The notes: generated by a model from the sequence alone, not told the origin. A stretch of DNA of 64,000 nt from Neoechinorhynchus agilis (GCA_051530055.1 CM121341.1:2718151-2782150); one strand, 5' to 3'; positions 7,663 to 41,239 are shown, counted from the first letter of the stretch. Numbers and translations are program-made.

Positions 7663-8118
7663 TCATACTGATTCTCGGTGGCCGTTTGCCATCACTTGAT
7701 TCTCCTGTTCGTAGATTCTTGAATTGTTCCGTTGAACTACTTCAGATACATTTCCATTTAGATGAGGACGCTGAATCCTTAATTCCTCGACAATTTGTTG
7801 TCGTCCTTTTGGTCGCCACAGTGGACCACTCGTAATGCTATCACTGATCGCCCAAAACGATTTCCTCGGTCTTCCTCGAACAGGAATTTTCCTGAATCTT
7901 CGACAAAAAGACAGTGTATTCCTGATTGCTCCTTTCCATGACTTGCTATCTGTCCCTTGTTTGAAATATGGGAAATTCTCCTGAATCCATACGTAGATTT
8001 CATTGACCCGCAATCTTCCGGTCAAACTGTTCTCGATCGCTGCTTCTATTAAATCCGCATAACTTGCGTGGTCCCATTCGCTGATTGCGCCGTTAACTAT
8101 TTCTGCAGGGGAATGCAT
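7663..8118 (-). CDS. 151-aa forkhead-domain protein, FoxO-like, copy 1
   Basis: SYADLIEAAIENS...IYVWIQENFPYFKQGTDSKSWKGAIRNTLSF...KSFW aligns with the FoxO winged helix (SYADLITKAIESS...[24 protein letters not shown]). ATG start, intronless. Confidence 0.85.
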   Translation of the reverse strand: MHSPAEIVNGAISEWDHASYADLIEAAIENSLTGRLRVNEIYVWIQENFPYFKQGTDSKSWKGAIRNTLSFCRRFRKIPVRGRPRKSFWAISDSITSGPLWRPKGRQQIVEELRIQRPHLNGNVSEVVQRNNSRIYEQENQVMANGHRESV

Positions 8119-9179
8119 TTGATCGGGGTCAGAACAACACCAAGAGAGAGTTCACTTTGAACATATCCGAATCGTTCGGCTTTATCCGTAAATCGCTGTG
8201 AACAAACAATGGTAAATAAATGGACAAATATTTATCAGCATCGAGGTTGGTGTTTTAGATACCATTTTGTTGGAGTTCTTTGCTTTGTTGACTTAAAATG
8301 TGCTTATTAAACTTCGTTTCTTGGCAGATCGCCGAAGATCAACTGATTAATCAGCGTTCTAACTTTTTTGGCATTAAATAATGATTCTTATTAATCGATT
8401 ATTTAATCAAATCAATATTTAATTTTGTGTTTATTATCGGTCTCGGTCAATGGATGCGCCGGCGCTTCGTTAAGATTATAAAAATTGACGAAGGAAAGGA
8501 CAACAAGTAAATAAAACTTTTCGAAGTGTTCTTTTCTTAATCGCGTTTTTATTGCTCTTTCTGTCTCCACAAAATTTTGGATCGATTTTAGGTGCCATTT
8601 TCAACGATAAACATTCTTTTATTGTGTGCTCGCTGCTGTGAAGGAAATCAATATATTCGATGAAAGGTATTCAAAATCAATTTTATATAATACTTTTCTA
8701 AAAAATCTTTCTCCTAAAAAACTTTTAAGAGTCATTGGTATAGTAAAGAATTAAAAATTGTCTTATGCTTTGTTTTGTGATATAAGAAAAACCGCATCGA
8801 AGGTAAAGCCGCAAAATTCAGGTCGAAATAATTTTTGGGCCTTTAAACTATAGCGACCAATAACTGAATTCCGATTGTGTTTTCTTGTCTGTTGTATCAA
8901 ATAATCAATATACTAAAATGCTTATTAAATCTTAATTTATAACAATAAAAACAACGGCATTCTTTTGGTCTTTTGATCTTAAGCAGAATTAGTGCTTAAA
9001 AAGTTTGTTAATTCATTGAATTTAAGTTTTAAATTCTCCTAAGAACGTCAATAAATCACTCTTTTTCTACATTTGAAGGAGGAATCAGGGTATCGACGAA
9101 CGGCAATTAGGAGCGCGGACCATGTTCTCGCAACTGAGTACACGCTAATCTCTCTCGCACTCAAGCACATTCAATCGTC

Positions 9180-9989
9180 TTAAGAATTCCTCATTCTGGG
9201 GCAATGAGCGATTCTGTGTCCATACTCCCCGCAATTATAACAATTTCCGCGAAAAAATCTCGGTGGTGATCCGTATCGATGTGGTAGTTGTTGCCTTGGC
9301 AGTCGCGTATTTCTGCGAGGTACGCTGGGATTCCCTCTTGTTCTCTGGCCATTTGCCGCCTGCCTTGGTGGTGGCGACGACGCTGGATGATTGACGTTTG
9401 CAGTGGTCCTACCGATTCCAACAACCGATGGATACTCTTCACCGCCCGAACCGTATGACCGATTAAGCTCTCCCTCAATTTGTGAATTTTGCGTTGGCGA
9501 TGCATACCGGGCACCCGATATATTCGATAAATTTTCCACCATTTCCCCAATTGATCTTAAGTCGTCGGATTCAAGATGCCGATTATATTCAAAATGTGAA
9601 GACGATTCACTAAACTCTCCATCGTCTTCATTCGATGAGTCCTCGTCCACTACTTGAAATAGTGCGAGAATATCTCTAGGAACTTGTCCTTCAGGATCTG
9701 CTGGTGACGACCTTGATCGTATACATAGTTCTCGTTCCCATTTTTGTTCAATGGATAAAGTTTCCAAGATGTGATCGATTGCATGGATGAGGCCGATGTT
9801 TCTCGCAAGGCATTTGATAGGAGATCGACAATTCGGGCAAGTTGCCGATATTTCCTGGATACTTCTGGTCACACACCAGTGGCAAAACGAGTGGCCGCAA
9901 GGTTGTACAACCACAGGAGAGATGAAATAGTTAGTACAAATCGGACATTCCAAGGAAGAAGCTATTTTATCCAAAACGCCTTTACTCAT
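9180..9989 (-). CDS. RING-finger (C3HC4, RNF8/CHFR-like) protein with C-terminal CCHC zinc knuckle, 269 aa
   Basis: CPIC...PCGHSFCHWC...CPNC followed by a helix (LIHAIDHILETLSIEQKWERE), and C-terminal CYNCGEYGHRIAHC. Likely start is the ATG at 9989 (MSKGV); the longer track ORF is read-through into CRE sequence. Confidence 0.8.
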   Translation of the reverse strand: MSKGVLDKIASSLECPICTNYFISPVVVQPCGHSFCHWCVTRSIQEISATCPNCRSPIKCLARNIGLIHAIDHILETLSIEQKWERELCIRSRSSPADPEGQVPRDILALFQVVDEDSSNEDDGEFSESSSHFEYNRHLESDDLRSIGEMVENLSNISGARYASPTQNSQIEGELNRSYGSGGEEYPSVVGIGRTTANVNHPASSPPPRQAANGQRTRGNPSVPRRNTRLPRQQLPHRYGSPPRFFRGNCYNCGEYGHRIAHCPRMRNS

Positions 9990-10162
9990 GCATGAACCCG
10001 AACAGCGCAAAAACTTACGAGCAATCGAAAAACTTACAATACCCCATACAAGCAATACAAAGATTGTGGAGTAATTGCAAACAATCATAAAGCAAATAAC
10101 AAAATATATCTTGATACCCGAGCAAACAAACGAAAAGGAGGAATTTGTGAACGAAACATTCA

Positions 10163-13082
10163 ATGACGTCTTTACCGAATCACAAGCACGGAAGAATAGT
10201 AACACACAGGTTTCTGAGCTCGGATCCCTCCATGGACCCGAGCAGTAAGGACTGTTCCAATTTGGCTGGTTGTATCGCTGCACAAGATGATGATGCACAC
10301 AAACCTACAGGACACTGTTCAGTATGCGGTCGTAAATTCGGATTGACCTCGATGGATTTAATTAGGAAACACGGTCCATTGAAAACGAGATGTCTTGGCT
10401 CTTCCACCTTCACCTCCACAATCCTTCAGTGGTGGTCAACCTGACTCAGTATCTCCAATCGTCTCCCTGATCGGCACCTTGCCACAAAACATATTAAAAA
10501 GGATCCCAAAAGGCGCGAGATACCAATGTGCGAGGTTCTATTCGACACTGCTCTCGAAGTGCGGCTCTGAGCCGATCAAAGCTAACTACTTGCGGTTATT
10601 CGCCTTTCCTCGAATAATCTTGAACACAAACCGCGACTCGGACAGTAATCTCACCTGTACGATCAAAAAGCGACTCACGGATTATGACAATTTATTTGGG
10701 ATAAGCTTGAGTAGATCTATGGAGTCGCCTTCAATCGAAGCTAAACGCCCAAAATGCTCAAACCAACGTTCTCTCCTTGCCAAGAGAGTCTCTGCAAAAC
10801 TGGTGCAGTTCGGTTGCTAAGTTCGACGGGCTCATTTGCTAGAAGTGATCAGTGCACACTTGATGCACTTAGGGGTAAACACCCCGTCGGCAATCCCCCT
10901 TCCTTACCTGAAGTCCCTACTGAGGCCAGTTTCCAATGCGATATCTCAGAGTTAAGAAAAGCAATCGCCTCCTTCCCGAACGGCTCTGGACATAGTCCCG
11001 ATGGTCTTCGCCCTCAACATTAGAAAGACATGCTCAGTTTAGGAGCAGCAGCTGCTGGATCAACTCTTGAAGCATCCCTAAGGGATTTCACGGAACAAAT
11101 CATCAACGGTATCCCACCTCCCGAGGCGACAAGCTTCCTCTTTTCAGCCACACTATGCGCCTTATCCAAAACGAATGGTGACATTCGTCCGATTGCTGTG
11201 GGATGTACAATACGACGTTTGGCTGCTAAATTATTGTCCAAAAGATTTTACGATGACGTTGGACGTCAACTCCGTCCCTATTGACTTGGGTGCTGCACTC
11301 CATGTGGAGCTGAATCGATCGTCCATGCGACAAGATCTTTCATCAGACAATCGAGCACATTGAACGCAGTGCTTAAGGTGGATTTCAGCAACGCCTTTAA
11401 TTCAGTCGATCGCTCGGCCCTACTGAAAACAGTTGCTGTTAGCCCTCCTGGAGCATATCGTTATTTTCAGATCGCATATGGCACCAAGACCCCTTTATTC
11501 TTCGACCACCACACCATTTGGTCAGAAACCGGTGTACAACAGGGAGATCATCTGAGTCCGATTGGGTTTGCTTTGATAACGAACGATATCATCCGGATGC
11601 TTAACTCAAAACTAAACGTGTGGTATCTAGACGACGCGACAATTGGTGGAGATCCGGCAGTAGTCCTAGATGATTTGAAGAGGCTGATCATCGCCACATC
11701 GAAAATCGGATTAACTGTGAACTCGTCGAAATGTGAGCTAATGCTAATCAATGCAAACCAATCGGATAGAGATGCAATTTACAGCTCCTTTCTTGATATC
11801 GCTCCGGGAATACGACTCATTGAACGGGATCGTTTCTCTCTTCTTGGTAGCTGTGTCCTTAGTTCGAACGTTGAGAGGGAAATCGATGAAGTATTGCCTG
11901 ATTTGGAACGCTTGTGCAGTCGAACATGTGAGCTTGGCTCTCATGAAGCCCTATTCCTTTTGAGGAATTGTTTATGCATGCCAAAAATGCTGTATAAGTT
12001 AAGAGCGGCCCCATACTTCGAGCACTAACATAAGCTTCGACAGATTGATTCAATGCTGAGGAGACAACTACAACGCATCACGAACTCCCAGCTTTCAAAT
12101 GAGGCATGGCAACAAGCAATACTGCTTATAGAATACGGTGGATTGGGCCTTCGGAGCGTAGTCGAATTAGCACTTCCAGCTTTCCTCGCATCGGTCACCA
12201 AAACAAAAAATATAACCAATGTTATATTGCAGCAGACCGATATCTCGACGGATGATGTCGAACGTCGTGGAGTTTCCTCGTGGCTCATCAAGACCGATCT
12301 TGATCAAGTTCCAGAAAATGGTCACAAACAGCCTGTTTGGGATAAACCCTCGTAGAGAGAGCCTATAATTCCTTGAAAGGGCATCTCGACTCGGTGCCTC
12401 AAACACGGCTAGTGACGAGCTCTTCTAAGGAGTCTGGAGCTTGGTTAAATGCGCTGCCAATCAGACCTTTAGGCACACACCTTGACGACGAGTCGGTGAG
12501 GGTGGCTGTCGGGTTGAGGCTTGGCATACCTCTATGCATACCCCACAAATGTCGATGTGGTTCAGTAGTTGAAGAGTCAGGTAGACATGGCCTTCAGGAC
12601 GCTCCACTCAAACCGAACCACCTGTGTCGCTCAGATGGCAAACGTCCCGATGGGATGACCATATTCCCGTGGAAAGAGGGAAATGCCTTATCTGGGACGC
12701 CACATGCGTCGATTCGTTAGCACCCTCCAACCGAAGTGATGCAATATCAGGACCGGGAGGAGCTGCGACGGCGGCCGAAAGGAGGAAGACAGCGAAATAC
12801 GCTGAGCTGGAAAAGACTCACCTATTCCTTCCTTTCGGTGTGGAGACAAATGGGGCGTTTGGAGTTTCGGCAAAGAAATTTTGCGCGGAGATAGGCCGAC
12901 TACTCATAAAAGCCAGCGGAGATCACAGACAAAGGAACTACCTCATCCAACGCTTGGGTGTGGCTATTCAACGGGGCAACACGGCGAGCGTGATAACAAC
13001 GGCCCAATGGAGTTGCGCGGAATGAGGGATATAATGAAAACTAAAAGATTGAATTATAATAAAAATTGGGATAAGAAAAAAA
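10163..13082 (+). mobile_element. CRE-clade non-LTR retrotransposon, degenerate (CRE copy 2)
   Basis: CSVCGRKF Zn finger, KRIPKGAR, DIRPIAVG, DFSNAFN, GVQQGD, WYLDD, CRCG...H, RPDG, ETNG, IQRGN. Many stops and frameshifts; A-rich end near 13080. Confidence 0.85.
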
Positions 13083-13640: not shown

Positions 13641-14510
13641 ATGGACTACATCGAGGCGTAAACTTTTTGAGATTTATACAACGAAGTTGAAGAGTCAAAA
13701 TCTGTCAAGTTTGCACCAAAAAATGACGATCGACGTTAAAAAATTATAAGCGCGTTTCTTTCGTTTTTTCATGGTTTTTCGCTTTCAGCGTCGAATCGAC
13801 GGCGCACGTTGTTTCGGAATTTTGGAGATGCGTCTTCGTGCTCTTCTCGTGAATGATTTCAAACGAGCTCGGGCTAATCGATTTCTCAAGCTAAGGATGT
13901 AAGTAAATTCATAAAAGTTCAATTGGATTTTCACTAACGTTTTGATGATTCTCCTTAACTGAGCGGATATTAACGCTTAATATTTTTAATTTTATAATTT
14001 TTCAGAATTACGATACTTTATGAACGAGAAGTCCTTTTGACATTGCAATCGTGGACCATTTGGACTTTGGCTTATAATAGCAGACTTTTTCTTGTTGTAA
14101 TGAATCTCAACTGTAATTTCGGTTACTATCGCAGCGCTTAGTTGCTCCAAATTTTAATCCTAAATCAACCTTAAGTTACACATTAAACCTTGGATCAAAT
14201 GTTGATAGCCAAACTTCAGCATTCGCCGATCCAAGTTGATTCAACTGCCGGCGATTTATAAATCCCGCACCTCGAAGACCGGAAAATAAGCTTTGCTCAT
14301 CGCTAAGATACTGATCAAGGCGGGACATTCAAACGTAACTGAATTCCCTTGAAAGCTTTCTAATGCAACAGCAGTATTTTGCAATATTCCCCATGGTATC
14401 AACAAACTTTGCATCGTTCGTCTTTATTATACAGACCAATTGAAACTGGTCCCTTATTTGCGGGAACTTGAAATGATGTCAGAATTAAAAGCAGGCCTGC
14501 CATGGACTGC
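13641..14510. repeat. Duplicated block D, second copy 35161-36030
   Basis: Near-identical over about 870 bp. In the 36 kb copy it is joined by deletion to sequence matching 14737-14760. Confidence 0.95.
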
Positions 14511-14769
14511 TTTCAAAGGTATCTGTATGACCAATGGTAATTTTGGCGCCGCCTGTATCACCGACCAGCTGAAACTAGTTGATTCCCCATGAAAACGAAG
14601 TTTTTAAAATGTTGAATCTTAGAAGACAACCTCAAATGTGCCCAAAATGTTAATTTCAAGAAATTTAACATCCATTGTCCTTAATTAAATCTATGCTTGC
14701 ATTCAAGGATTTCCTTCCTTGTCGTTAGTTTTTTCCTCCAACTTTTAGGCTTCCATGATAACAACAACA

Positions 14770-15270: not shown

Positions 15271-15299
15271 TTAGTCTTCTTCGCACGTGCTCGCACATA

Positions 15300-17039: not shown

Positions 17040-20010
17040 TAGATATAAACATGTTTTATTTATGTAAGAAATGCACGATCCACACACTTGCCAGCATCTA
17101 TCTTTGCTGAAGGTGTCTGGATGTCGGATGTTGACGGCAAGGGAGGTGGGACTTGTTTTTGAAGGTGTGTTAATGTGCGATCCGAGGCTTTGTACAGGAG
17201 ATGACCCATTGGGAGTCTTTCTTTGTGGTCGAAGTAAATTGTGGAGGGGGTTCAAGAAGACGTAGGGCGTTTTTGGAGAAAATGGAGTGGAGGTGGGCGT
17301 CGAGGGGAGGGGAGTGAAGTCCCGCATATTTTAGCTGCTCTCTTGTGGAAGGTTGGCCTTCCGCAATAATAAAAGTAACAATTTCTTAAGAGGTTTTGAT
17401 GTATTCCAATTGAGTCCACTATACTTCCTCTGCGCATCATTAGAGTTTCGACGGTTGGTGATAACTGGCAGATATGATCTGACTCCGGCCTGAAGACTAC
17501 TGTTAGACTTTGATGTGTAACAGATCTTTCCCGTGCAAGACGCATCTCTTTCCCAAGGAATGATTATAACCCCATGCTCTAAGTCGTATGGTAGTCTAAT
17601 ATCAGTTGATTTTATTGATTCAGTGATGTTTTCCTTTGTTCTCATGTAAGCACAATCAGGCTCCGGCCATGATTTGTCATAAATATTGGGGTCTACTCTC
17701 CCATTTATAAGTTCAAACACTTCCCTGAGAATACTCTCTGTGGATTAGATTGATATGATATCGTCTTAATTTCTAATAAATTTACCTTACATGTGGTTGT
17801 CAGTGTGAACTTCTTGATAACTTTCGCATTTTCAGAATGGATACAAAAGCCTTTGGCATACATTGAAACATTCACATATCCACCGTCTATTCGGCCTTTT
17901 GTAATTCTAGGTTGACCTCCGAAACAACTAATCATAGATGGGGGATAATAGCCCATGGCTCGATGATGTCGGTAGGGATAAAAACTCTTGTGATAGCCAT
18001 GGTAGATGAAAACATTGCAATTAAAACCAGGCAAGACAAATTCATTGATGCGAGGAAAGTGGGGAAAGCTTATGTGAGGATAGGAAGGATGGCAGAAAGA
18101 TAAAAGTGGGCAAGGTGTTTAGGGGATACGCCGAGACGCCGGAGGAGTTTGAGAAGGTAAAGACGATGGTTTGTTTTAGAGAGTGTAAATGAAATGTGGG
18201 CATCCCATTTAAGGTTTTCTTGTAAAATCACGCCCAGAATTCGGAGAGAAGAGGAGCGTTGGATGGGGATAGGGAGAGGTTTGGAAATGTGGGGGACAAG
18301 CTCAAAAGATTTGGATAAATTTAGGGAGAGGTTTAGGGTGGAGGGCGAGGAAATGAGATGGTTGAGCTCGTCCATGGTAGTGGAGAGGGAGAGAGACGGA
18401 GATGCGATGATAATGACTGTGAGGTCATCTGCATAAAGAAAATTTTTGATAGAGGGAGCGAGGGGGTGGAAGTCATTTAGAAAAATGTCAAAGGGAGAAG
18501 GGAAAGTACGGTGCCTTGGGGAACCCCTTTAAATATGGGCAGAGGAGGAACAAGAAGTTCCATATTGGATATATTGTTCGCGGTTGGAGAGGAAAGAGGA
18601 AATCCAAGCGAGTTGCCAGGTTTGGAGGCCAAATGAAGCACATGATTGGAAGAGAAGGGAGTAATCGACAGACTCGAACGCCCTGGAAATATCCAGTTGC
18701 ACGAGACGGACGGTTCATGCTGCTTTTTGTCAGTGTGGAGTGGAGGGAGGGGTAAGCAGGATTACCTGACCGGAAAGCTTTGGTGACCTGCATTTGAAGG
18801 GTTTTTAGAAAAGGCGAGAACCATGGAGGGTCGCGGTTCGAGATTCGTATTGTTTTGCGAGGAAAGGAGGCCTTCATCGCAGATTCTATTAGATTTGACA
18901 AAAAGCCCGTCGCAATCGAGGAGTCGGTGCCAAAGATGGTAGAGCGGTCTTGTGTGATAAGAGAATCGACACATACAGCAAAGGCGTGGGTATGATGATA
19001 ACGTTTACCCAGACCACGTAGGGATCGGAAAAGGAACGTTTTTGAGGTAATGAGGGGGAGAGAAGGATAGAACAATGGTCAGACAAGGCGATCGGGGGAG
19101 TTTGGTGGTGTAGGAGTATTGCCTGATGTTTGAGAAAATTTTATCAGGGCGGGAGGAGAAGCGTGTGGGGAAAGTAACGATTTGGGAGAGATGAGAGAGC
19201 GAGGGCGTGATCGGCAGTTTGTTAAAATCGCCCAATATGATGAAGTGATCTGAGGAAGTGGAAAGTATGTCAGTAAATAGGTGGTCTATTTGTTGAAGTC
19301 TGTTGGGGATGATTGAGGATGGAGGGCGATAAAGGCCAGCAATGGAGATCTCACGTTGGCCATTGCGGAGGGGGAGATGAAGTTGGATGTGTTGCCATTC
19401 AAGATCGTCTGAGATGAAAAGGTAGGTGAACAGCAATGGTATGGGAGAGAGGCGCGGATGAAGATCGATATGCCTCCCCCGTTTCGGAAGTCCTTCGTGA
19501 GGTGAAAAGCTTGAAAGTTTGGAAGGAAGGCAGATAATTTGCTATGGGGTGAGAGTCATGTTTCCGTAATTACAAGGATGTCGGCGTTGCAAGAAGAGGC
19601 AACTACATGGAGCTCATCCAGTTTGGGGAGGAGGCTGCGGATGCTACAATAAAAGATTATTGGAAAGGGATGTTTAGAAGGGACAGGAGGAATGGACACT
19701 GACGGAGAGGGTTGAAGCTGCGCAGTGAGAGAAGGGATGGGAGTTGACTGATGGGGTAGTTCGGGGGCTAATGGATTCGCGGGTAATGGATTCGTGGGTG
19801 GACACTGTAGTAAGGGGTGATTTGAGTGTAGAGACCATAGGGGTGGGAACTGTGCATGCGGGATGAACTCGGGGGGAAGGAGGATATTGGGAGTTGAAGA
19901 GGTGGTGGTAAGAGGTGAGGTAGTGTGAGCATCCAAGGTATTTTTCTGAGAAAGTGACTCCGGATGTCAGGAGGCACAGGGATTCACAGGACATTGGATG
20001 GCCGTATGCC
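17040..20010 (-). mobile_element. L2/CR1-like LINE (APE + RT, degenerate), interrupted at 17354-18045
   Basis: APE motifs SIRSLLPKLDEL...VITET, GLYRPP, ILGDFN, SDH; RT thumb LRILGVILQENLKWDAHI...YLLKLLRRLG...ILPILTxAFPTFLAS; resumes with FHKRAAKICGTSLPS after the insert. Confidence 0.85.
17354..18045 (-). pseudogene. Endogenous viral element: N-terminal ~230 codons of a rhabdovirus-like glycoprotein (G), three frameshifts
   Basis: Reconstructed: MNLSCLVLIAMFSSTMA (signal peptide)-ITRVFIPTDIIEPWAIIPPSMISC...TLTTTCKVNLLEIKTISY...GKC...SWPEPDCAYM...YDLEHGVIIIPWERDASCTGKICYT/HQSLTV...HIC...RNCYFYYCGRP. The Cys spacing follows the vesiculovirus G pattern (W..VP....CP; TTC; FPPQSCGY; DEYTG..C....C.T; ACKMQYC). 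Confidence 0.8.
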
Positions 20011-21061: not shown

Positions 21062-21572
21062 GTCCAAGATTATTGATAACTCTCAGGCCCGCTCGGTTCT
21101 CGAAACTGGTGACTTGACTAACGTCGCCATTTTCTATTTTGGTGCAAAAGACGATTTAAATATCGCCACTTCATTTCTTCATCACTTTATGGCCTTTATT
21201 GAGTGTTCAATCTCTTATTTTTGAGGTTAAAGATGACCCTTAGGCCCGCTCGGTTCTCGAAACTGATGACTCGCTAACGTCGCCATTTTCTATTTTGGAG
21301 CAAAAGACGATTTAAATATTGCCACTTCATTTCTTCATCACTTTATGGCCTTCATTTAATGTTCAATCTCCTGTTTTTGAAATTAATGATAACTCTCAGG
21401 CCCGCTCGGTTCTCGAAACTGGTGACTCGGCTAATGTCGTCATTTTCTATTTTGGTGCAAAAGACAATTTTAATATCGCCACTTCATTTTATTATCACTT
21501 TAAGGCATTGATTGAGCGTTCGATCTCTTTTTTTCAGATTAATGATTACTCCCAGACCCGCTCGATTCTCGA
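21062..21572 (+). repeat. 156-bp tandem repeat (about 3.2 units) overlapping the kinesin start codon
   Basis: gat(a/g/t)ac.c.cag(g/a)cccgctcg recurs at 21075, 21232, 21388 and 21544. Confidence 0.95.
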
Positions 21573-23785
21573 TCTTTTGTGGACTAAGGCCACTTCCGAA
21601 TGGAGAGACTCAATCGTGTTGCACCGTTATTTCTCCGGTCTGTGTGGCACTGCATGCGCCCAACGATGTCACAGCAAAGAAGCCGCCGAAAAAGGAAATC
21701 CTTGGTTCATTTCGGAACGTCTATAAACCCGAAGACTCACAGTCTCATCGATTCAAAGACCTTTGTATTCCACTGGTTGTAGGCTTTCTTCAAGGATCCA
21801 GCTCTCTTTTATTTGCTTATGGTGTAAGCGGATCCGGAAAGACGTACACAATGGTCGGCGCTGAAAGCGATCCGGGTATTATCCCAAGATGCCTTGATGT
21901 GATATTTAATAGCATCGGCGATCGATTGAACGAGCCGTACACTATCGTCTTTAACTCACATTCAGGAGAATTCATTCGACTGACAGACGCTGAACGTATG
22001 TTGGAGCGACAAAGGAGAGAGATTTTGCCATCCATCATGAATTCCGCTAAGACTCAGCCATCAACTACAGGTCAAGGTAACAGGATCCGTGATCCGAGCC
22101 GGTTTTTTTGTGCCGGTGGAATGGAGCAGAGTCGCTTCACCCTAATTGTTTCCTATGTCGAGGTATACAACAAAAACATTCATGATCTTCTGGACGATTC
22201 GGCGTGGAGTCATCGATTGGAAGGACAATTTAAAAAGGCTTTGAGACGAGACACTCAGGGGGATGTGTTTGTAGGTGAATGCACTCACGTCGAAGTTCGA
22301 TCTTCCGATGATGCCTACGAAGTGTTTATGAAAGGAAATCAGCGACGAAAACTGTCCGAGACGATGGCCAATAGTGGTTCCACTCGTGGACATGGAGTTT
22401 TCACGGTCCACCTCGTCCGTCTCGATGATCCCGCCTATAACCATGCCGATAGAACGACGGTTGCTATCATCAGTAAGCTTTGTCTTGTTGATCTTGCAGG
22501 ATGTGAACGTCAATGCAAAGCCAAAACTACAGGACATCGATTACAAGAAGCTGGACACATAAATACGAGCTTACTTGTTCTTAGAAAATGTATTGAAGTC
22601 ATGCGGACAAATCAGAAGCAATGCGATCAAAAGCTCGTGGTTCCATACAGGGACTCGAAACTCACAATGCTTCTAAAGTACTTCTTCGAAGGACACGGAC
22701 GTACTTTTATGCTTCTTTGCATGAATCCGTCCTGTCGCGATTACGAAGAAAATGTTAGAGCTCTACAATTCGCAGAAATCACTCAGGATCTTGAGAATGT
22801 GACTGCTTCGGGCGCAACAATTGCCAAGCATGTAAATATCAAGACAAAAGATGATCCGAAGATCAATGGTGAAATGGCACCTACATCTTCATCAAGCGAA
22901 GATACATACTCGGTAAGTCAAATGGGAAATTCCATAATCAAGCGAATGGACCAGAACCTGAGGGCGTATACAAAAATTATAGATAAACTGCACTTAATTG
23001 AGCCTGAATGGAAGGCGATGTCCAAAAAAGTAAATGTATTTAGTAGAAGATTGAAAGAAAAGGAGAAAGTGGAAGCTCGACTAGCAACAGAGAATCATGT
23101 CTTGCTCAATGAGAACAGAAATCTTAAAACTAGAATTGATGAATTGCTTGTTGATTTGGACGTTCATAAGCGAAAACAGGAGTTTGTAAGCCACGAAGAT
23201 GTCACTCGAATGTGCAATGCAAATGATACAACAACCACTACTACATACAGAACAGAATACATTGTGACTCCTTGGAACTTAGAAAGTGGGATCGACAGAA
23301 CCATTACACACACTCCAAAATCAATATCTCGAATACGTGGACTACATTACAGGCATCGCAGATCAAGTTCAGGCCATGAAACTTGGATAAATCATAAGCC
23401 ACGAGACATACAAATAAAAGACCAGATCCTGCAGCCGAGGTTTAATCGACGATCAAAATCACACGATGTTTGTTCATCCCGGATGCTGGACGACCTCACT
23501 GGTCCTCATGCAGCCAATCGATATGCATTGATACATCAAGAAAAAAGTGGACGAGGAGATTTGAAAACCGAAATTCTGAAGGCCGACGTGTATCCTACCA
23601 CTACAGGCGGTGCTAAAGTAGTCTTTAAGGAAGTAGAACGTGTTCAAAGCAGCCAAAGTCTGTCGCGAAAGCGTGTTTTTTTCGATTTGTACAAGGAAAC
23701 GGAGTCTGATGATCATGTGTTGAGCACTATCACAAATGACCCGAAGATTACAAGGACTACGGGGTATGGTCACAATTTCAAATAA
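21542..23785 (+). CDS. KIF23: Kinesin-6 (MKLP1/Pavarotti-like), intronless, 747 aa
   Basis: P-loop GVSGSGKT, kinesin-6 loop-6 insertion, NSGSTRGH, DLAGCER, VPYRDSKLT, coiled coil, and an MKLP1-type tail (HRRSSSG..W.NHKP...YALIHQE...TGGAKVVF). Confidence 0.9.
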   Translation: MITPRPARFSIFCGLRPLPNGETQSCCTVISPVCVALHAPNDVTAKKPPKKEILGSFRNVYKPEDSQSHRFKDLCIPLVVGFLQGSSSLLFAYGVSGSGKTYTMVGAESDPGIIPRCLDVIFNSIGDRLNEPYTIVFNSHSGEFIRLTDAERMLERQRREILPSIMNSAKTQPSTTGQGNRIRDPSRFFCAGGMEQSRFTLIVSYVEVYNKNIHDLLDDSAWSHRLEGQFKKALRRDTQGDVFVGECTHVEVRSSDDAYEVFMKGNQRRKLSETMANSGSTRGHGVFTVHLVRLDDPAYNHADRTTVAIISKLCLVDLAGCERQCKAKTTGHRLQEAGHINTSLLVLRKCIEVMRTNQKQCDQKLVVPYRDSKLTMLLKYFFEGHGRTFMLLCMNPSCRDYEENVRALQFAEITQDLENVTASGATIAKHVNIKTKDDPKINGEMAPTSSSSEDTYSVSQMGNSIIKRMDQNLRAYTKIIDKLHLIEPEWKAMSKKVNVFSRRLKEKEKVEARLATENHVLLNENRNLKTRIDELLVDLDVHKRKQEFVSHEDVTRMCNANDTTTTTTYRTEYIVTPWNLESGIDRTITHTPKSISRIRGLHYRHRRSSSGHETWINHKPRDIQIKDQILQPRFNRRSKSHDVCSSRMLDDLTGPHAANRYALIHQEKSGRGDLKTEILKADVYPTTTGGAKVVFKEVERVQSSQSLSRKRVFFDLYKETESDDHVLSTITNDPKITRTTGYGHNFK

Positions 23786-28239: not shown

Positions 28240-28756
28240 TAACCGAAGCTACAAAATAAGAAGATCGATCGTTTTAACATAGGATCCAATATTTGAAAGG
28301 TCTATCATTGAGATCCGAAAGGAGGTCTTTAAGAGAAAGCAGCATATAGTCGACATGAAGACCTGGAATTCGAAGGTTTATCCAAAGACAACAATCGCTT
28401 CTGGATGCTGATTTATTCACACAAAAAAGATTAAATACCGAATCGAGTCAAGTATCTTCTAAAGGAACAACGGCAAAAAACGCAAATACTGAAATGTCTT
28501 CGTCGATATTTTGGTCTGCATCGTCGTCGTCCGCGTCAATTATCAAACTACCAATTGGATGCTGTTCGATCACCAAATCCGTAAGCTTTCCTGCCACATC
28601 CTCACTTTCGTTCTGAAGCGATTTTTTGAACTCGAATTGCCTAACAAGAAATTGAATTCCGTTACGAAATCGTTCAGATGGAGGATATTGGTCGAACTCA
28701 ATGACAATCAATTCGCTAGAATTCACTTCGTCCTCTACTTTTGCGTTCTTAGGCAT
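28240..28756 (-). pseudogene. BCCIP: BCCIP/Bcp1-like pseudogene fragment
   Basis: IVIEFDQYPPSERFRNGIQFLVRQ...KLTDLVIEQHPIGSLI...DEDISVFAFFAVVPL matches the BCCIP N-terminal half. In-frame TGA at 28448-28450 and frame-disrupted downstream remnants (IQKRLL; LLSLKDLLSDLNDRPFKYW). Confidence 0.75.
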
Positions 28757-29301
28757 CTTAAAGGAAAAGCTCTGCGTTCTTCGCTGATTGGTCAAACGGA
28801 AATTTTGGCGTTTGGGCCTAAAGTATTAAGAGCTTCAGCAAACAAGCGATAAAAATGAAAAACTTGGAATTTATTCAAATGACCATGGATATTTCTACTG
28901 AAGTGCGGGACTAATATCAAAGAACTCATGTACTTTTCATCCTAAACAACTCTGGAGTCCTATGGGCAAGAAAATAACTACAAAAATTGATAATTGCAAT
29001 GAAGGTGAATATCATCGGCATGTCCCTGAAGGAAATTCTTCGTAAAATTGCTTTCTAATTTTATCTAAAGCAATTAATTTTGGTTCGAAACAATAGATTC
29101 TGTTTTTGCTAATAATTTGCCGATTTACGAAGAAATTTTAGTTGAAAAGGCGAGTTTGTTCTTCAATGAAATTTTATTAGAAATTATAGACACGTTCTTT
29201 ATTATCAAAAGACGTCTTAATCCTTAACTTGAACTCCCTGATGGCTTCCATTTATCCATCTGATTTAAGTTTCTAGATCACCATTTCCGATCAACGGAAA
29301 C

Positions 29302-29757
29302 TCATACTGATTCTCGGTGGCCGTTTGCCATCACTTGATTCTCCTGTTCGTAGATTCTTGAATTGTTCCGTTGAACTACTTCAGATACATTTCCATTTAG
29401 ATGAGGACGCTGAATCCTTAATTCCTCGACAATTTGTTGTCGTCCTTTTGGTCGCCACAGTGGACCACTCGTAATGCTATCACTGATCGCCCAAAACGAT
29501 TTCCTCGGTCTTCCTCGAACAGGAATTTTCCTGAATCTTCGACAAAAAGACAGTGTATTCCTGATTGCTCCTTTCCATGACTTGCTATCTGTTCCTTGTT
29601 TGAAATATGGGAAATTCTCCTGAATCCATACGTAGATTTCATTGACCCGCAATCTTCCTGTCAAACTGTTCTCGATCGCTGCTTCTATTAAATCCGCATA
29701 ACTTGCGTGGTCCCATTCGCTGATTGCGCCGTTAACTATTTCTGCAGGGGAATGCAT
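29302..29757 (-). CDS. 151-aa forkhead-domain protein, FoxO-like, copy 2 (in duplicated block 28924-30193)
   Basis: Protein identical to copy 1; two synonymous nucleotide differences. Confidence 0.85.
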   Translation of the reverse strand: MHSPAEIVNGAISEWDHASYADLIEAAIENSLTGRLRVNEIYVWIQENFPYFKQGTDSKSWKGAIRNTLSFCRRFRKIPVRGRPRKSFWAISDSITSGPLWRPKGRQQIVEELRIQRPHLNGNVSEVVQRNNSRIYEQENQVMANGHRESV

Positions 29758-30193
29758 TTGATCGGGGTCAGAACAACACCAAGAGAGAGTTCACATTGAA
29801 CAGGTCCGAATCGTTTGGCTTTATCCGTAAATCGCTGTGAACAAATAATGGTAAATAAATGGACAAATATTTATCAGCATCGAGGTTGGTGTTTTGGATA
29901 CCATTTTGTTAGAGTTCTTTGCTTTGTTGACTTAAAATGTGCTTATTAAACTTCGTTTCTTGGCAGATCGCCGAAGATCAACTGATTAATCAGCGTTCTA
30001 ACTTTTTTGACATTAAATAATGATTCTTATTAATCGATTATTTAATAAAATCAATATTTAATTTTGTTTTTATTATCGGTCTCGGTCAATGGATGCGCCG
30101 GCGCCTCGTTAAGATTATAAAAGTGGACGAAGGAAAGGAGAACAAGTAAATAAAACTTTTCGAAGTGTTCTTTTCTTAATCGCTCTTTCAGTC

Positions 30194-33656: not shown

Positions 33657-34310
33657 TTATTCTGCTGATTCTATAAAAATGCTGAACCTTTCAATTTTTC
33701 TACAATTTAAATCTTTGAAGACTTTAAAATTTTTTGTTACCGGGATTTCGTGGTGGCGGTTGAGGAACGGTGCCAGCAGACAGGCGCTAACCATGTTCCC
33801 GTGAATGGCCTCAGACAGTCGATCTGGGAAGGACCTCTTGTCCCACCAGTTGAGCCACCAGCTTTGTATACGAGCAGTTATTTCGGGTTCGACGGAATTT
33901 GTCATATTTACTTCGCTGCCGAGATATTTCACTGTTCTTCTCATCGTCAAATTCACAACTTCTAACTTTAACGCTTCCGGTCCCATGCATATGGTCTTCA
34001 ACCAGTTTACCTTAAGATCGTTAGTTCCCAAAACCTTAAGTCACCCTTCCAGACTTCGCTGAGCCTCTTCACATGTTTCAGCTGTCACAATCAAGTCATC
34101 AGCGGACAATAGCGCCCATGGAGGCTTTCGGGCGATTTGTTCAGTACTCAAGACATCCGTGGTCATGACGAATATCAACGGGCTGAGGGCTGATCCCTGA
34201 TGCAATCCAACTATAACCTCAAAATAGTTCTGGCACAAGTGCAGGATCTTTCGGCACGCCCATATTAGGTCTCTCGGCACTGTATCATATGCCTTCTCGA
34301 GGTCCACGGA
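33657..34310 (-). mobile_element. RTE-clade LINE RT fragment (overlaps block A copy 2)
   Basis: DLEKAYDTVPRD, HQGSALSP, ALLSADD, KYLGS. Confidence 0.8.
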
Positions 34311-36419
34311 TGTTGGACTACAACGATTTCAATGTCCAGCCATCCGCCCTAACAACGTTTTATAAAAGCCAAAATTATTATGTTAAAGCTTTAGATTGGT
34401 GTTCTAAGGCCACAGGAAACAATTAAATGGTTGAATTCCTTTCTTAACAATCGATTACAATTTATGGAAATAGGCAGCTTCGCCTCGAGCATCTTGGCAA
34501 TCAACATGGGTTCCCACTAAAGAAGAAATGGTCGCATACCAATGTTTTAGAAGTATAAAGTAAACCGAAAACGTACAAATTGGAAGTAAAAGCAGAAATC
34601 GTATAAAAAGGTAGAGGACCATAAAATTAAACGAATATGTGAAGAAGCGATCCCAAACCGCGATTAGAGCTCAGCTGAAACATCGCGTTTAAGTAGTGGG
34701 TTCATTAGAGTAGAGGATACTGTATCAAAACCAATTAATATTGAAGAAATAAGTGCTTTACCCGGAATTTTAGGATGTATTAAGAAAGTACTCCAGTCCT
34801 TAAGTCCCAGTTTGAATTGCCAATCTGGTGATCTCGTTTTATCCCTTACCCATTCGCTCTAACAGGTCACTACATCAGTCTACTTTGAAACTTTATCAAG
34901 CTTTTAGATGGAATTCGTATGGATGAGGTCGCCTAAGCCGAACGTCGGCTTCTTTGGTAACTCCTGATCTGGTCTGCGGAGGGAAAACCCCTGGCTTTCA
35001 GATGCCTAACAAAGAAGCTTCCTTTAATGAAAAGACCAACTCCAGCCTTTTATAATGCTGCAACGATGGCTCAGACAACTCTGAAACTATAAAAGTACCA
35101 GCAACCTGACAATGTACTCTGGCGTCCATCAAAGTTGCAAGGAGCGCTCCCGAAGATTAAATGGACTACATCGAGGCGTAAACTTTTTGAGATTTATACA
35201 ACGAAGTTGAAGAGTCAAAATCTGTCAGGTTTGCACCAAAAAATGACGATCGACGTATAAAAATTATAAGCGCGTTTCTTTCGTTTTTTCGTGGTTTTTC
35301 GCTTTCAGCGTCGAAACGACGGCGCACGTTGTTTCGGAATTTTGGAGATGCGTCTTCGTGCTCTTCTCGTGAATGATTTCAAACGAGCTCGGGCGAATCG
35401 GTTTCTCAAGCTAAAGATGTAAGTAAATTCATAAAAGTTCAATTGGATTTTCATTAACGTTTTGGTAATTCTCCTTAACTGAGCGGATATTAACGCTTAA
35501 TATTTTTAATTTTATAATTTTTCAGAATTACGATACTTTATGAACGAGAAGTCCTTTTGACATTGCAATCGTGGACCATTTGGACTTTGGCTTATAATAG
35601 CAGACTTTTTCTTGTTGTAATGAATCTCAACTGTAATTTCGGTTACTATCGCAGCGCTTAGTTGCTCCAAATTTTAATCCTAAATCAACCTTAAGTTACA
35701 CATTAAACCTTGGATCAAATGTTGATAGCCAAACTTCAGCATTCGCCGATCCAAGTTGATTCAACTGCTGGCGATTTATAAATCCCGCACCTCGAAGACC
35801 GGAAAATAAGCTTTGCTCATCGCTAAGATACTGATCAAGGCGGGACATTCAAACGTAACTGAATTCCCTTGAAAGCTTTCTAATGCAACAGCAGTATTTT
35901 GCAATATCCCCCATGGTATCAACAAACTTTGCAGCGTTCGTCTTTATTATACAGACCAATTGAAACTGGTCTCTTATTTGCGGGAACTTGAAATGATGTC
36001 AGAATTAAAAGCAGTCGTGCCATGGACTGCTTCCAACTTTTAGGCTTCCATGATAATGTTTTTCCCGTGCAACACCTTCGCTATTTAATCTCGATCGTCG
36101 AACGGCTTTCCAACGTCACTAGTGAACTCTAATCGACATCTTCAACTCGTTCACGCAAACGAGTGATTTTCCTCGTCCATTCTTTTTTCCCGATATAGGA
36201 AAGTTTTCGATTGACAACTGCGTTGCATCGTTCACACGAGATTTCATAAACGGCGTTTTTTTTAAGTTTTACTGGCAAGCCGGTATTGTTATCATCATTA
36301 AATTTTAGTCTATCCCTTTCTTGTCCGGCTTAGTTTTTAGGCATAAAGCCAAACAATAACATCAGAGAAGTGATATAACCACGTAGTCTCTAATGCACGG
36401 TTAAGAGTTTGTACATTCC

Positions 36420-37030
36420 TCCGGATCCTCAGATACCTAGAAACTCACTTTTCACCGCCTCCGGCAGGTGCTCAAGAGTACGCAGTATGCGCAGCCAGGC
36501 CTCTGGCGCCAGCCTGCAGTTGTGCTTTCTCCTTTCCGCTCTTGCTATTGCTGCACGAGTCCTTGCCCCCGCCCAGTTCGGATGCCCTTCTTTGCGTTTG
36601 TCGCCAAACACAAACAACCCCGGAGACAACACGCTTTTTATTGTTTCTCCGCAACAGCTGGGTCTACGACTCATGACCCTCCTCGCTTCCGCGAAGCCTT
36701 CTTTGAGGGTCCTATGTTTAGCGTAGATGAACTGGAGGCTGCATCCGCACCCTCCGCAGTACGTTCTTCGCTGAGCCCCGTCATCGCCGGCGCCGTTGGT
36801 GGACTCGCAGCCGTCTGTCTGGCTTTATGCCTAAAAAAATAAGCCGGACAAGAAAGGGATAGACTAAAATTTAATGATAAACGGCGTTGCTACGGCCACA
36901 GAGAGATATTTTCCCTCGTTCTCCCTTCGTGTCCCTGCATGTGCCCGGCGAATACCTGCACATAATGTATTATTTTGGACATTCGCTAGGCGATTTATGA
37001 TGTCCTGTCCTCGTCTGTATTCAGCGCAGG
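36420..37030 (+). mobile_element. Probable RTE-like LINE C-terminal remnant (GC-richer island)
   Basis: Across frames LRYL...LFTASGRCSRVRSMRSQASGAS...QFGC and RCYGH...RRIPAHNVLFW, resembling the FKYLGS...DG.C..EI..RI...LLYGC...LRW.GH thumb motifs. Confidence 0.4.
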
Positions 37031-38040: not shown

Positions 38041-39800
38041 TCGTCACATTTCTCCACATGCGAAAAGAGCGACTTTCATACGGACGAGAGAAAATCCTCA
38101 CCCGAATTAAGGGTATTGTTAATATACGGTAAGATGTATGGCGGATTATTACGGGAAGAGGCCAACGATAACAGATTTTTGCTGAATAAACGGAAATAGG
38201 CAACGTTGAGTGAGAGATGTGATAAGTTTTTCGGATTGCAAAGTTGTGACTGATTGACCATATAAAGATATCATGACCTAAAGTGTCAAAAAAGGCACCT
38301 GACAGTCGAATTGAATCAAAAAGTTCAGATATTTCTTATATATGATCAGATCCAGGAACGAATGTGTATTGGAAACGAGATTATGGAATGCAGGGAAAGT
38401 TAAGGAGTAATAAGGTTTAACTGCATTAACGATGGCTCTGGATCATTTCAAAGACGGATCGTTATAATCTCCCACAATAAAATCAATATTAGCCATGAGA
38501 AGCCATTTGAATCTGTTTTTAACGAACGTCCGATGGATGAAACCCGGTCTAATGTACAAAATAATGAGGGTAAGAAATTTCCGATTCACTAAGAGTTTGA
38601 AAAGGGCGTAGGAAATTTCCGCCCTTTGCGAGAAGTGAAAAATTGATATAAGACCTTGTGAGGCAGGACTGAATGGAGCAGTAATGAAAGAGTTAAACTC
38701 TGAACAGTTCAACTGAGGTAGAAAGTTATATAGTTGGTCCAGGGTATAAATTCTTTTCGTTTCCGGCAGAAAGATGATAGAAACACCAGGTACGAAACGA
38801 GCTGGCTTAGCAAGATTAGTCTCCCCCCCCACAGTTCCACTGTAACACCCGGAAGTCCCCGACCATAACCTGAGCCTTCGAATAATCAGATTTTTCTAGC
38901 GGTTGCATCTGATAAGAAAGCCGCTGTTTCATTGTTGATAAGCGAGCCTCTCGCATAGATCATCTCTTACTTGCCTGGAACTTTCCACCATGGCTATTGA
39001 AATCGGGCTGCCTGTGTTGCGTGAATTTAGAAAAAACTTAATTTTCACACTGAAGGGTTTCTCAAACTCTTTTTTATCTTCACGAGCTAAATCCGGTTGA
39101 AGTCCGTTTGCCAAGAATTGCACCTTTTGAGTGGCAGATTCGACCGAATATACTTCATGCTGAAGATTGAAGCTAGAGAATTCCTTTAGACTGGATAGCC
39201 AATCGTGGTTCATCGAGCAGACTCTTAAGATTCCTCCATAGTAGGTAACATGATCGATTCTTTTGACATCGTAGTTTTTGAATGAACGCGCCCATGGAAC
39301 AACGCTATGCTTGTAAATCACGTCTTTAGGCATTATCGGGCTCGATTTAATAGTGAGGATGTGAGGCCATCTTTTGATTGGATAAACTAAGTGTCCATGG
39401 TGAGATCCGATTGAAGTTGTCGACTGTTGAGGAATTCTTTGTTTTTGAGAATCCTCCAACAGGAGCTGAGAGCTAGGGGTTGTCCCTGAGTCAAAGAGCA
39501 GTTGCTCTCGGGGCTCTGAGGATAAAGAAACCCTCAGAGAATTGGATAGCCATTTGCCACCCTCCATCGCAACAGCTTATTGCACAAACATGAGCCAACG
39601 ATATACCGACGACCTAGCGAACCTCAACCGCAACTCCGTGATATTTCCCATCGGAATGGGATTGCTCGATTCAATTCTTGACGCTTATGGTGGCCGTGTT
39701 AAGGTGGCGTCTCACTGCCGCAGCTAAGAAGAATGTTGGAGGTGCTACATATCTTAGGGGCTAACACGAGCTCCGATCTGGTTACCCTGGACCCTAATGT
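38040..39800 (-). mobile_element. APE-RT LINE family X, 5' half (ORF1 + APE)
   Basis: KRWPHILTIKSSP, VTYYGGILRV, FLANGLQPD...FEKPFSVKIKFFLNS; APE motifs FLPETK, ILYIRP, VGDYND, LDL...GHD. Confidence 0.8.
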
Positions 39801-40783
39801 CTGCTTTGGGCGTATAGACATTTAACGAGAGCAAACTATTAAAGTGATAGCAAACTGTTTAAACCAACAGGAGATTCTATTGTACAGTAAAGGTTGGAGT
39901 GTCTGCGCTGATTATAGTCGCTTCACAACTGAAGAAGATACGGCATATGAAATAAGGAGTGCTAAATTCGTTGGGATCGCTGAGACGAACAAGGCTATAA
40001 TCTAAAGCAAACCAGAGGTCCAAGTATTAATATCAGTTGAAAATGAAGATTGTGGCGATGGCGAATAGCCCATATTCCTCTACCGTTGAAATAGGCTTCT
40101 TAACCGAATTTAACACGATATAAGCCTTTGAGATCTTGGCTTTACCATTTACGTGGCTTTGGCGTCGATGGTTATAATGCTGTATTCTAAGATGCCATCC
40201 AAGATGGCGACAGTGCCTGTAGATTTGGCCTACTTCGTGTATTCAGAGATAGCAATCTATTAGAATACATTATCGCATTTCCAAAATACGAGCTTGACCG
40301 ATGTCAGATATGCTGTTTAGATTGCCTCTGTCTGTACCATGAATTATGGTGTCCGAAATTAGAGAATTTCTCCAAGAAGAATTGCAACTTCTATGCAAAA
40401 CTGTTACTCATGTATTTTTAATCCTAAACAACTCTGGAGTCCCATGGACAAGAAATCAACCGCTAAAATTGATAATTGCAATGAAGGTGAATATCATCGT
40501 CATGTCCCTGAAGGAAATTCTTCGTAAAATTGCTTTCTAATTTTATTTAAAGCAATTAATTTTGGTTCGAAACAATAGATTCTGTTTTTGCTAATAATTT
40601 TCCGATTTACAAAGAAATTTTAGTTGAAAAGGCGAGTTTGTTCTTCAATGAAATTTTATTAGAAATCATAGATACGTTCTTTATTATCAAAAGACGTCTT
40701 AATCCTTAACTTGAACTCCCTGGTGGCTTCCATTTATCCATCTGATTTAGGTTTCTAGATCACCATTTCCGATCAACGGAAAC

Positions 40784-41239
40784 TCATACTGATTCTCGGT
40801 GGCCGTTTGCCATCACTTGATTCTCCTGTTCGTAGATTCTTGAATTGTTCCGTTGAACTACTTCAGATACATTTCCATTTAGATGAGGACGCTGAATCCT
40901 TAATTCCTCGACAATTTGTTGTCGTCCTTTTGGTCGCCACAGTGGACCACTCGTAATGCTATCACTGATCGCCCAAAACGATTTCCTCGGTCTTCCTCGA
41001 ACAGGAATTTTCCTGAATCTTCGACAAAAAGACAGTGTATTCCTGATTGCTCCTTTCCATGACTTGCTATCTGTCCCTTGTTTGAAATATGGGAAATTCT
41101 CCTGAATCCATACGTAGATTTCATTGACCCGCAATCTTCCGGTCAAACTGTTCTCGATCGCTGCTTCTATTAAATCCGCATAACTTGCGTGGTCCCATTC
41201 GCTGATTGCGCCGTTAACTATTTCTGCAGGGGAATGCAT
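40784..41239 (-). CDS. 151-aa forkhead-domain protein, FoxO-like, copy 3 (in duplicated block 40406-41676)
   Basis: CDS appears identical to copy 1. Confidence 0.85.
   Translation of the reverse strand: MHSPAEIVNGAISEWDHASYADLIEAAIENSLTGRLRVNEIYVWIQENFPYFKQGTDSKSWKGAIRNTLSFCRRFRKIPVRGRPRKSFWAISDSITSGPLWRPKGRQQIVEELRIQRPHLNGNVSEVVQRNNSRIYEQENQVMANGHRESV

Follow-up and report, generated by a model that had tools for sequence, protein, structure and literature searches.

FoxO transcription factors are central to insulin, stress and lifespan control, and invertebrates usually have a single FoxO gene. The third helix of the forkhead domain, the recognition helix, is among the most conserved DNA-reading surfaces of eukaryotic transcription factors. 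A 64 kb stretch of chromosome CM121341.1 of the acanthocephalan fish parasite Neoechinorhynchus agilis (GCA_051530055.1, approximately positions 2,718,151-2,782,150), which we will refer to as the window, carries three copies of a gene for a small forkhead-only protein in which both base-contact residues of that helix are replaced. The three genes belong to a larger family, called here the mini-forkhead family, which on the proteins compared below is found only in N. agilis and has a recognition helix unique to it. FOXO3a reads the GTAAACA site with Asn208, hydrogen-bonded twice to A4, and His212, hydrogen-bonded once to T3'; Arg211 and Ser215 make further contacts, and the turn between helices 2 and 3 contains the five-residue insertion (GDSNS) of the FoxO class (PMC2175300). 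Mouse FoxO1 with the paired changes N208A and H212R is the standard DNA-binding-deficient allele, and FoxO1-delta256, a DNA-binding domain without its transactivation domain, is a dominant negative (PMC8970673). Two more distant systems also bear on this locus: the AHL proteins, whose type II/III AT-hook reads RGRPRKY (PMC7896510), and the FoxQ2 class, for which rapid evolution and taxon-specific duplications are reported (PMC12828049).

By tblastn the window contains exactly three forkhead domains, and the three open reading frames (ORFs; coordinates of these and all other features are collected in Table 1) translate to one and the same protein, as had been stated in the original prediction, which was made from the DNA alone. 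Annotated genes on CM121341.1 encode exactly this protein, with a spacing of 21,639 bp that matches copies 1 and 2. Upstream, the ORF is bounded by an in-frame stop 12 codons before the ATG, and two AATAAA polyadenylation signals lie +99 and +124 nt past the stop codon in all three copies. Within the coding sequence (CDS), copies 1 and 2 differ at two of 456 bases (window 7954, C/T, and 8020, G/T), which are the third positions of codons 33 and 55; both changes are synonymous, again as predicted. The flanks of the same two copies differ by 22 substitutions and one 3-bp indel per 626 aligned nt, close to the 19 or so differences in about 615 nt that had been counted by eye. Copies 1 and 3 differ at nine flank positions and at none in the CDS. 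The contrast between CDS and flank is significant for every pair (Fisher p = 3e-4 for copies 1-2, 0.007 for 1-3 and 0.007 for 2-3), and not one nonsynonymous change has occurred within the window clade, where about 12 would be expected for copies 1 and 2 from the divergence of their flanks. Public annotation appears to fuse copy 3 with an unrelated ORF downstream of it (window 38929-41239, minus strand). That ORF, at 38929-39567, encodes 212 amino acids without a Pfam match, and the fused 'forkhead' model has 360; the fusion is deduced from the annotated gene table together with the presence of only three forkhead domains in the window.

The encoded protein is a forkhead domain with little besides. 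Pfam PF00250 matches residues 18-95 with 71.6 bits (cut-off 27; E = 6e-20) over profile positions 5-83 of 88, and 46 forkhead chains in the PDB match at E <= 1e-3. Nothing else in Pfam is significant in the 151-residue protein, including the FOXO KIX and transactivation domains (PF16675, PF16676), a regular-expression search finds no Akt/PKB motif of the form RxRxx[ST], and the basic RRR-S region that follows wing 1 in FoxO proteins is missing. The chain ends 55 residues past the domain, in a tail that is predicted to be disordered. The original prediction of a minimal forkhead-only factor, with neither Akt sites nor a transactivation tail, agrees with these results. An AlphaFold model built on a five-sequence family alignment places helices 1, 2 and 3 at residues 20-32, 38-48 and 58-75, with predicted local distance difference test (pLDDT) scores of 62-81.

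The recognition helix, WKGAIRNTLSF, occupies residues 61-71 (window 7906-7938 in copy 1). Here the canonical Asn has become Gly63 and the canonical His has become Asn67 (Ser in one subfamily), with Arg66 and Ser70 kept. All 12 distinct family proteins conform to WKG[SA]IR[NS]TLS[FY], and Gly63 and Thr68 are invariant in 12 of 12. At the two altered positions the 118 nearest domains outside the family have Asn in every case and His in 117, so that the helix flagged in the original prediction as non-canonical proves to be both conserved across the family and unique against these relatives. Residues 58-108 have an isoelectric point of 12, RRFRK and RGRPRK lie in or around wing 1, and VRGRPRK is invariant in full-length members.

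The FoxO class is the probable source of the family, as judged from sequence comparison. In a ranking of PDB chains, Brugia DAF-16 and FOXO1/3/4 score 58-63 bits, at least 12 bits ahead of FOXM1 (46), FOXN1 (45.7) and FOXA2 (43.6), and the best named matches in large libraries are FoxO proteins. FoxJ3-like and other non-FoxO matches lie within a few bits of FoxO, which speaks against an assignment by ranking alone, and labelling of the best matches by the Pfam FOXO-TAD domain was informative for only two of ten. Three signatures point to FoxO. The N-terminal series E-W-D-H-A-S-Y-A-D-L-I includes a Trp column that is common only to FoxO-type sequences. The turn between helices 2 and 3, KQGTD--SKSW, fills three of the five FoxO insertion columns, compared with none in 32 and one in ten of 42 non-FoxO sequences. 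Finally, wing 1 has the FoxO length.

A neighbour-joining (NJ) tree was built from 141 domains, among them human reference domains that serve as class labels only. For this tree, FoxO type is defined by the loop insertion; the strict regular expression W...SYADLI misses divergent FoxO-type sequences and gave a misleading absence of any FoxO sister. On the full data, the family falls inside a clade otherwise made up exclusively of FoxO-type taxa, 92 of the 93, whether or not the signature columns are included. Its sister is ACOME3_000567 (P0109), a single-exon gene for a protein of 331 amino acids with the helix WKNAISYNLSI, which lies at CM121341.1:2,857,745-2,858,740 (L010 10001-10996), some 99 kb from copy 3, and has the wing pattern P..R.R.SFWAIN in common with the mini-forkhead family. 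Other FoxO-type genes of N. agilis are ACOME3_010026/010055 and the more canonical FoxO ACOME3_002151 (P0115), and Pomphorhynchus laevis has at least one such gene, GJ496_008680. Proteins P0048, P0115 and P0128 belong, with ACOME3_000567, to this set of FoxO-type sequences. In the domain these acanthocephalan paralogs are only 40-47% identical to the mini-forkhead family, and the FoxO class as a whole seems, from such sequences, to have radiated in acanthocephalans. A FoxO derivation, as first proposed, is the best-supported origin, at a moderate level: it draws on the PDB and named matches, the three signatures and a weakly supported NJ placement.

The annotated proteins and fetched loci of N. 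agilis, on which the family count rests, yield at least 16 annotated genes plus a pseudogene that lacks annotation; CM121341.1 carries them all. The original figure of three copies is right for the window and falls short as a total, the family occupying two regions of the one chromosome. Members outside the window are clustered at 4.76-5.08 Mb, where they often follow one another in tandem every 2.4-2.8 kb. All are single-exon genes; full-length members encode 156 amino acids, and the window clade has a five-residue deletion. Intact full-length ORFs are present at 11 of the 14 loci examined. Longer annotated models (182, 174, 218, 333 and 360 amino acids) appear artefactual, either a stop having been skipped or neighbouring ORFs fused; in the over-extended paralog models of 182, 174 and 218 residues, for instance, a stop follows codon 156 each time. 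In one subtype unrelated sequence stands in place of the first 25 or so codons, which removes the beginning of helix 1.

A word-based comparison with 5.8 billion clustered proteins yields only four other N. agilis clusters, 76-83% identical to the query. Exhaustive HMMER scanning of 1.84 billion representative proteins returns one family representative below E = 1e-30, the next matches being ordinary or divergent forkheads that score 65 bits or less per domain, and in that set no relative above about 50% identity occurs outside N. agilis. Both halves of the description 'recently amplified' and 'lineage-specific' are upheld. The BCCIP-like gene fragment just downstream of copy 2 was duplicated along with the forkhead gene. 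BCCIP-like ORFs or fragments also lie between forkhead copies in the 4.76-5.08 Mb arrays (L007 11017-11647; L008 8245-8877), where some annotated models run them together with the forkhead gene that follows (the 333-residue model). The family has grown by local tandem and segmental duplication, in a process of birth-and-death and concerted evolution.

Within the window, self-comparison aligns 7460-8544 with 29102-30183 and 40584-41666 at 97.7-99.0% identity, and outside units of 1.1-1.3 kb there is no alignment between the DNA surrounding the copies. When the unit is compared with paralogs elsewhere, as much as about 990 bp of upstream or about 1 kb of downstream DNA is homologous; from the copy 1 unit to the 4.76-5.08 Mb paralogs it runs upstream to approximately 9109. 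The ends of the unit differ from copy to copy, with homology decaying gradually, and when copies and paralogs are compared the ends show no terminal repeats, poly(A) tract or target-site duplication. At 7460-7469, where the copy 1 unit meets one of the local repeats described below (repeat B), there is a microhomology of about 10 bp. Segmental duplication at the DNA level is favoured because upstream DNA is carried along, the ends are variable and decaying, and a junction shows microhomology. The assembly combines long and short reads in a hybrid MaSuRCA build, with purge_dups applied and Hi-C scaffolding (PMC12690905). There are no N runs in the window, and homology is confined to islands of 1.1-1.3 kb inside unrelated flanks; for these two reasons the copies are not haplotig duplicates. 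They are real, very recent DNA-level segmental duplicates of one family member. In copy 3 the distal upstream variants, the CDS and most variants 3' of it are copy 1-like, and those of the proximal promoter and the 3' end are copy 2-like, a mosaic which indicates gene conversion or recombination among the window copies.

Around the copies there are further local duplicates of 97-98% identity, designated A-D: 5384-6024 matches 33875-34515, 6976-7469 matches 34809-35303, 13641-14516 matches 35161-36036, and 24594-25031 matches 39923-40390. None of them occurs at the paralog loci. A direct repeat of 143 bp (7328-7469 = 13641-13783) brackets 6.2 kb containing copy 1, the RING finger gene and a reverse-transcriptase fragment. 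At 34809-36036 the two halves adjoin each other, and therefore either an insertion or a repeat-mediated deletion is implied.

Selection was assessed as omega, the ratio of nonsynonymous to synonymous rates (dN/dS), from the changes tallied along an NJ tree of nine distinct full-length coding sequences. The whole CDS gives 0.58 (p for omega < 1 = 0.004), the forkhead domain 0.41 (p = 0.001) and helix 3 0.24 (p = 0.012); the tail, at 0.98 (p = 0.53), looks neutral. On the stem leading to the window clade there are 4 synonymous versus about 14-17 nonsynonymous fixed differences, an omega of about 1, and pairwise Nei-Gojobori values among paralogs are mostly 0.6-0.94 at a synonymous divergence (dS) of 0.10-0.30. 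Selection on the family is real but moderate. The claim that the genes are selected stands for the domain; it does not extend to the tail or the stem, nor to those members that are truncated or pseudogenes. An omega near 1, named at the outset as the value that would speak against selection, was found in the tail and the stem and not in the domain. Gene conversion, which the mosaic variants indicate, may also contribute to the identity of the copies.

Conservation extends into the promoter, the proximal 220 bp of which are 84-96% conserved family-wide, as strongly as the CDS. Within it, upstream of each window copy, lies a same-strand cluster of three forkhead core sites of the form RYAAAYA; no other cluster of this kind occurs in the window, with 0.17 expected per shuffled window. 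The cluster is kept in 10 of 10 paralog promoters examined, with three to four core matches when both strands are counted, and there includes the near-palindrome ACAAATATTTGT. From their sequence, these clusters may reflect control by Fox factors or autoregulation.

These observations suggest, and we hold with moderate confidence, that the genes form a recent FoxO-derived mini-forkhead family with altered DNA binding and a repressor or architectural role. Descent would lead from FoxO through divergent acanthocephalan FoxO-type paralogs to the mini-forkhead family, which along this line would have lost its Akt/14-3-3 sites together with the regions for KIX binding and transactivation, exchanged both direct base-contact residues and acquired a strongly basic wing 1. 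The product of the family would be nuclear, constitutively active and DNA-binding, with a helix 3 that has ceased to read GTAAACA. Binding would have an altered or relaxed specificity, probably AT-rich or minor-groove-assisted, and would pass, as a best guess, through the very basic wing with its RGRPRK. Lacking an activation domain, the protein would serve as a small factor that represses, occludes or has an architectural role. Gene conversion and moderate purifying selection on the domain would keep the family similar, while the tail drifts and some copies decay. For the mini proteins we infer DNA binding, specificity, repression and expression alike from the features described above.

A number of results weigh against this interpretation. 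With Asn and His both gone, the protein might no longer bind DNA at all. Pfam AT_hook gives no match at E <= 1, the resemblance being that of a hexapeptide only. The AlphaFold model has a mean pLDDT of 54, with the wings unmodelled, scores below 50 from residue 82 and disorder over residues 86-151, and the four best Foldseek matches in the PDB, all FOXO1 or FOXO4, have E of 0.1-0.4, which is not significant. Bootstrap values are weak, at 0.37-0.43 for the FoxO-type clade and 0.68-0.75 for the FoxO-type sister. To these are added the modest family-wide omega, the neutral-looking tail, the stem value, the existence of truncated copies and a pseudogene, and the gene conversion that may add to the CDS identity of the window copies. 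The N. agilis transcriptome paper and one supplement contain no mention of forkhead, FoxO or BCCIP, and no transcript or protein evidence for the family was found, its proteins occurring only in NCBI annotation. The missing Logan and ENA copies of the family proteins are uninformative, because other N. agilis FoxO-type proteins are also found in NCBI only.

Several of these points would equally suit young duplicates that are decaying without function, their ORFs intact because they are recent (dS <= 0.3) and subject to conversion, and their helix the product of relaxed constraint. An omega of 0.98 in the tail and about 1 on the stem, pairwise values of 0.6-0.94 for most pairs, the 5'-truncated copies, one of them with an in-frame TAA, the mosaic variants that indicate conversion, and the expression evidence not found in the transcriptome paper and its supplement all argue for it. 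We consider this explanation unlikely, given the domain's omega of 0.41 (p = 0.001) and the 0.24 of helix 3, the invariance of Gly63 and Thr68 in all 12 distinct proteins, the intact full-length ORFs at 11 of 14 loci, the two CDS differences of copy 2, both synonymous, against 22 flank substitutions, and a proximal promoter as conserved as the CDS. The favoured reading of a FoxO-derived family with altered DNA binding also has a more ambitious form, in which the proteins, having given up the near-universal major-groove contacts of Asn and His, would constitute a new small forkhead class with an AT-hook-like RGRPRK loop in wing 1, acting as AT-rich or architectural binders, amplified perhaps under conflict to at least 16 rapidly evolving copies and controlled through the site cluster of their own promoters, by canonical Fox factors or by themselves; this is doubtful.

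Conflict could also be the whole explanation: the genes would then be a selfish ampliconic family (germline, sex-chromosome or meiotic drive) in which copy number and rapid change are themselves selected. At least 16 young copies in two arrays on one chromosome with a co-amplified BCCIP fragment, an omega of about 1 between subfamilies combined with an identical protein within the window clade, and a birth-and-death turnover that leaves truncated copies are all of this kind. The same pattern is equally expected of ordinary tandem gene families, and sex chromosomes are not discussed in the N. agilis genome paper (PMC12690905); we regard the idea as improbable. Less probable again is the second option of the original prediction, a dominant-negative FoxO whose DNA-binding domain occupies FoxO sites and blocks canonical FoxO. 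Its architecture does resemble the engineered FoxO1-delta256 (PMC8970673), a canonical-looking FoxO (P0115, ACOME3_002151) is encoded in the same genome, and the family promoters carry forkhead core sites. Competition, however, needs recognition of the canonical site, and in the mini proteins the base-contacting Asn and His, retained in 118 of 118 and 117 of 118 of the nearest relatives, are replaced; mutating these two residues leaves FoxO1 unable to activate its targets (PMC8970673). Competition for sites is unlikely because the residues replaced are those mutated in the DNA-binding-deficient FoxO1 allele. Very improbable, lastly, is an assembly artefact (haplotypes or misassembly) or spread by a transposon or retroposition, for which the hybrid MaSuRCA build with Hi-C scaffolding (PMC12690905) and the nearby reverse-transcriptase fragments might be cited: the first is rejected on the 1.1-1.3 kb homology islands in unrelated flanks, the lack of N gaps and the application of purge_dups, and the second on a unit that includes 426 to about 990 bp of upstream DNA with a conserved promoter, variable and gradually decaying ends without terminal repeats, poly(A) or target-site duplication, the junction microhomology of about 10 bp, and the absence of flanking repeats A-D from paralog loci.

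The rest of the window holds retroelement-like and other ORFs (Table 1). A sharply bounded block of 2 kb at 18001-20000 has G strongly in excess of C on the plus strand, with a skew of 0.3-0.7 and a GC content of about 0.48; its flanks are AT-richer and show no skew. Tandem-repeat arrays at 21067-21572, 53249-53985 and 60441-61136 have periods of 156, 189 and 193 bp, with three to four copies each, and the first lies directly upstream of the MKLP1-type kinesin ORF and overlaps its start.

Table 1. Features of the N. agilis window and related loci (window coordinates unless an L number, denoting a fetched locus, is given)
Feature	Position	Strand	Remarks
Copy 1 CDS	7663-8118	minus	single exon; 151-amino-acid forkhead-only protein; annotated as a 151-amino-acid gene in GCA_051530055.1
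Copy 2 CDS	29302-29757	minus	same protein; two private synonymous changes; annotated as a single-exon 151-amino-acid gene
Copy 3 CDS	40784-41239	minus	CDS nucleotide-identical to copy 1
Copy 1 duplicated unit	7460-8544	minus	426 bp upstream, CDS and 203 bp downstream; about 1085 bp common to all three copies
Copy 2 duplicated unit	28924-30193	minus	1271 bp common to copy 3, 97.7% identity
Copy 3 duplicated unit	40406-41676	minus	flanks a mosaic of copy 1-like and copy 2-like variants
Two AATAAA signals of copy 1	7534-7564	minus	same signals in copies 2 and 3
Forkhead core site cluster, copy 1	8202-8230	+	ACAAACA, GTAAATA, ACAAATA, 11 bp apart; 84-112 bp upstream of ATG
Forkhead core site cluster, copy 2	29841-29869	+	same cluster; 84-112 bp upstream of ATG
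Forkhead core site cluster, copy 3	41323-41351	+	same cluster; 84-112 bp upstream of ATG
BCCIP-like gene fragment	28280-28756	minus	just downstream of copy 2; Pfam BCCIP 28.3 bits for ORF 28448-28795
5'-truncated subtype	L006 5001-5474; L009 16973-17446; L008 7303-7692		two annotated; the third a pseudogene with in-frame TAA
Reverse-transcriptase (RVT_1) ORFs	2474-3718; 11360-12028	+	probably retroelement remnants
RING finger gene	9180-10298		
MKLP1-type kinesin ORF	21512-23785		
Tubulin C-terminal fragment	48279-48941		
CLPB-like AAA+ protein with ankyrin repeat	55491-56729		

The replacement of both base-contact residues in a helix that nevertheless remains constrained amounts to a natural experiment on how a fold changes or loses its specificity. 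The gene repertoire of N. agilis is described as reduced (PMC12690905), and this parasite has several divergent FoxO-type genes and a mini family of at least 16 copies without Akt control. Transcription factors lie outside the scope of another paper, which deals with the loss of genes among rotiferan parasites. If expressed, the family could provide FoxO-type DNA binding independent of insulin signalling, or an added layer of repression; if not, it is an ordinary young tandem family, partly decaying. With the BCCIP fragment amplified alongside it, the family also illustrates, in compact form, birth-and-death and concerted evolution.

Compared with known systems, the most distant parallels are in the mode of amplification. 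Uncharacterised multi-forkhead proteins of Schistocerca and Bemisia tabaci resemble the mini-forkhead family in lineage amplification, fast divergence and changed contact residues (WQKALSVNLSR, WRANVRNELSK); they are unrelated to it (28-37% identity), are multi-domain or so predicted, are not of FoxO type and do not have the Gly/Asn pair. Such proteins from Schistocerca, Bemisia tabaci and other assemblies (P0013-P0017, P0022, P0052) contain two to eight forkhead-like domains with non-canonical helices, and may be real arrays or fused tandem genes. FoxQ2, reported to evolve fast with taxon-specific duplications (PMC12828049), differs in not being of FoxO type. The likeness to AT-hook proteins (HMGA, plant AHL) is of another kind: the RGRPRK of wing 1 is identical to the RGRPRK core of AHL proteins (PMC7896510), but the motif sits within a forkhead beta-hairpin instead of a disordered linker, and we take the resemblance as a lead only. 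The engineered FoxO1 mutants come nearer in design, the mini protein joining a delta256-like truncation to changes at both the N208 and H212 residues (PMC8970673); unlike N208A/H212R, it has Gly and Asn in place of Ala and Arg, under constraint (omega 0.24), and has gained basic residues in wing 1.

Closest by descent are the acanthocephalan FoxO-type paralogs. They come from the same lineage, and ACOME3_000567 in particular is on the same chromosome, is single-exon and has a non-canonical helix and the common wing pattern. They differ in their length of 331-674 amino acids, their long Q/N-rich tails, a full FoxO loop, a retained Asn and a number of one or two copies. With the FoxO proteins proper (DAF-16, FOXO1/3/4), the mini-forkhead family shares W...SYADLI, a lengthened loop between helices 2 and 3 with part of the G-D-S motif, the length of wing 1, and the Arg and Ser of helix 3 (contacts as in PMC2175300). 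It departs from them in its size of 151-156 amino acids, without Akt/14-3-3 motifs, the C-terminal basic RRR-S region, KIX or transactivation domain, in a loop that is three residues shorter, in the exchange of Asn/His for Gly/Asn, in a wing 1 rebuilt as PVRGRPRK, and in its at least 16 copies.

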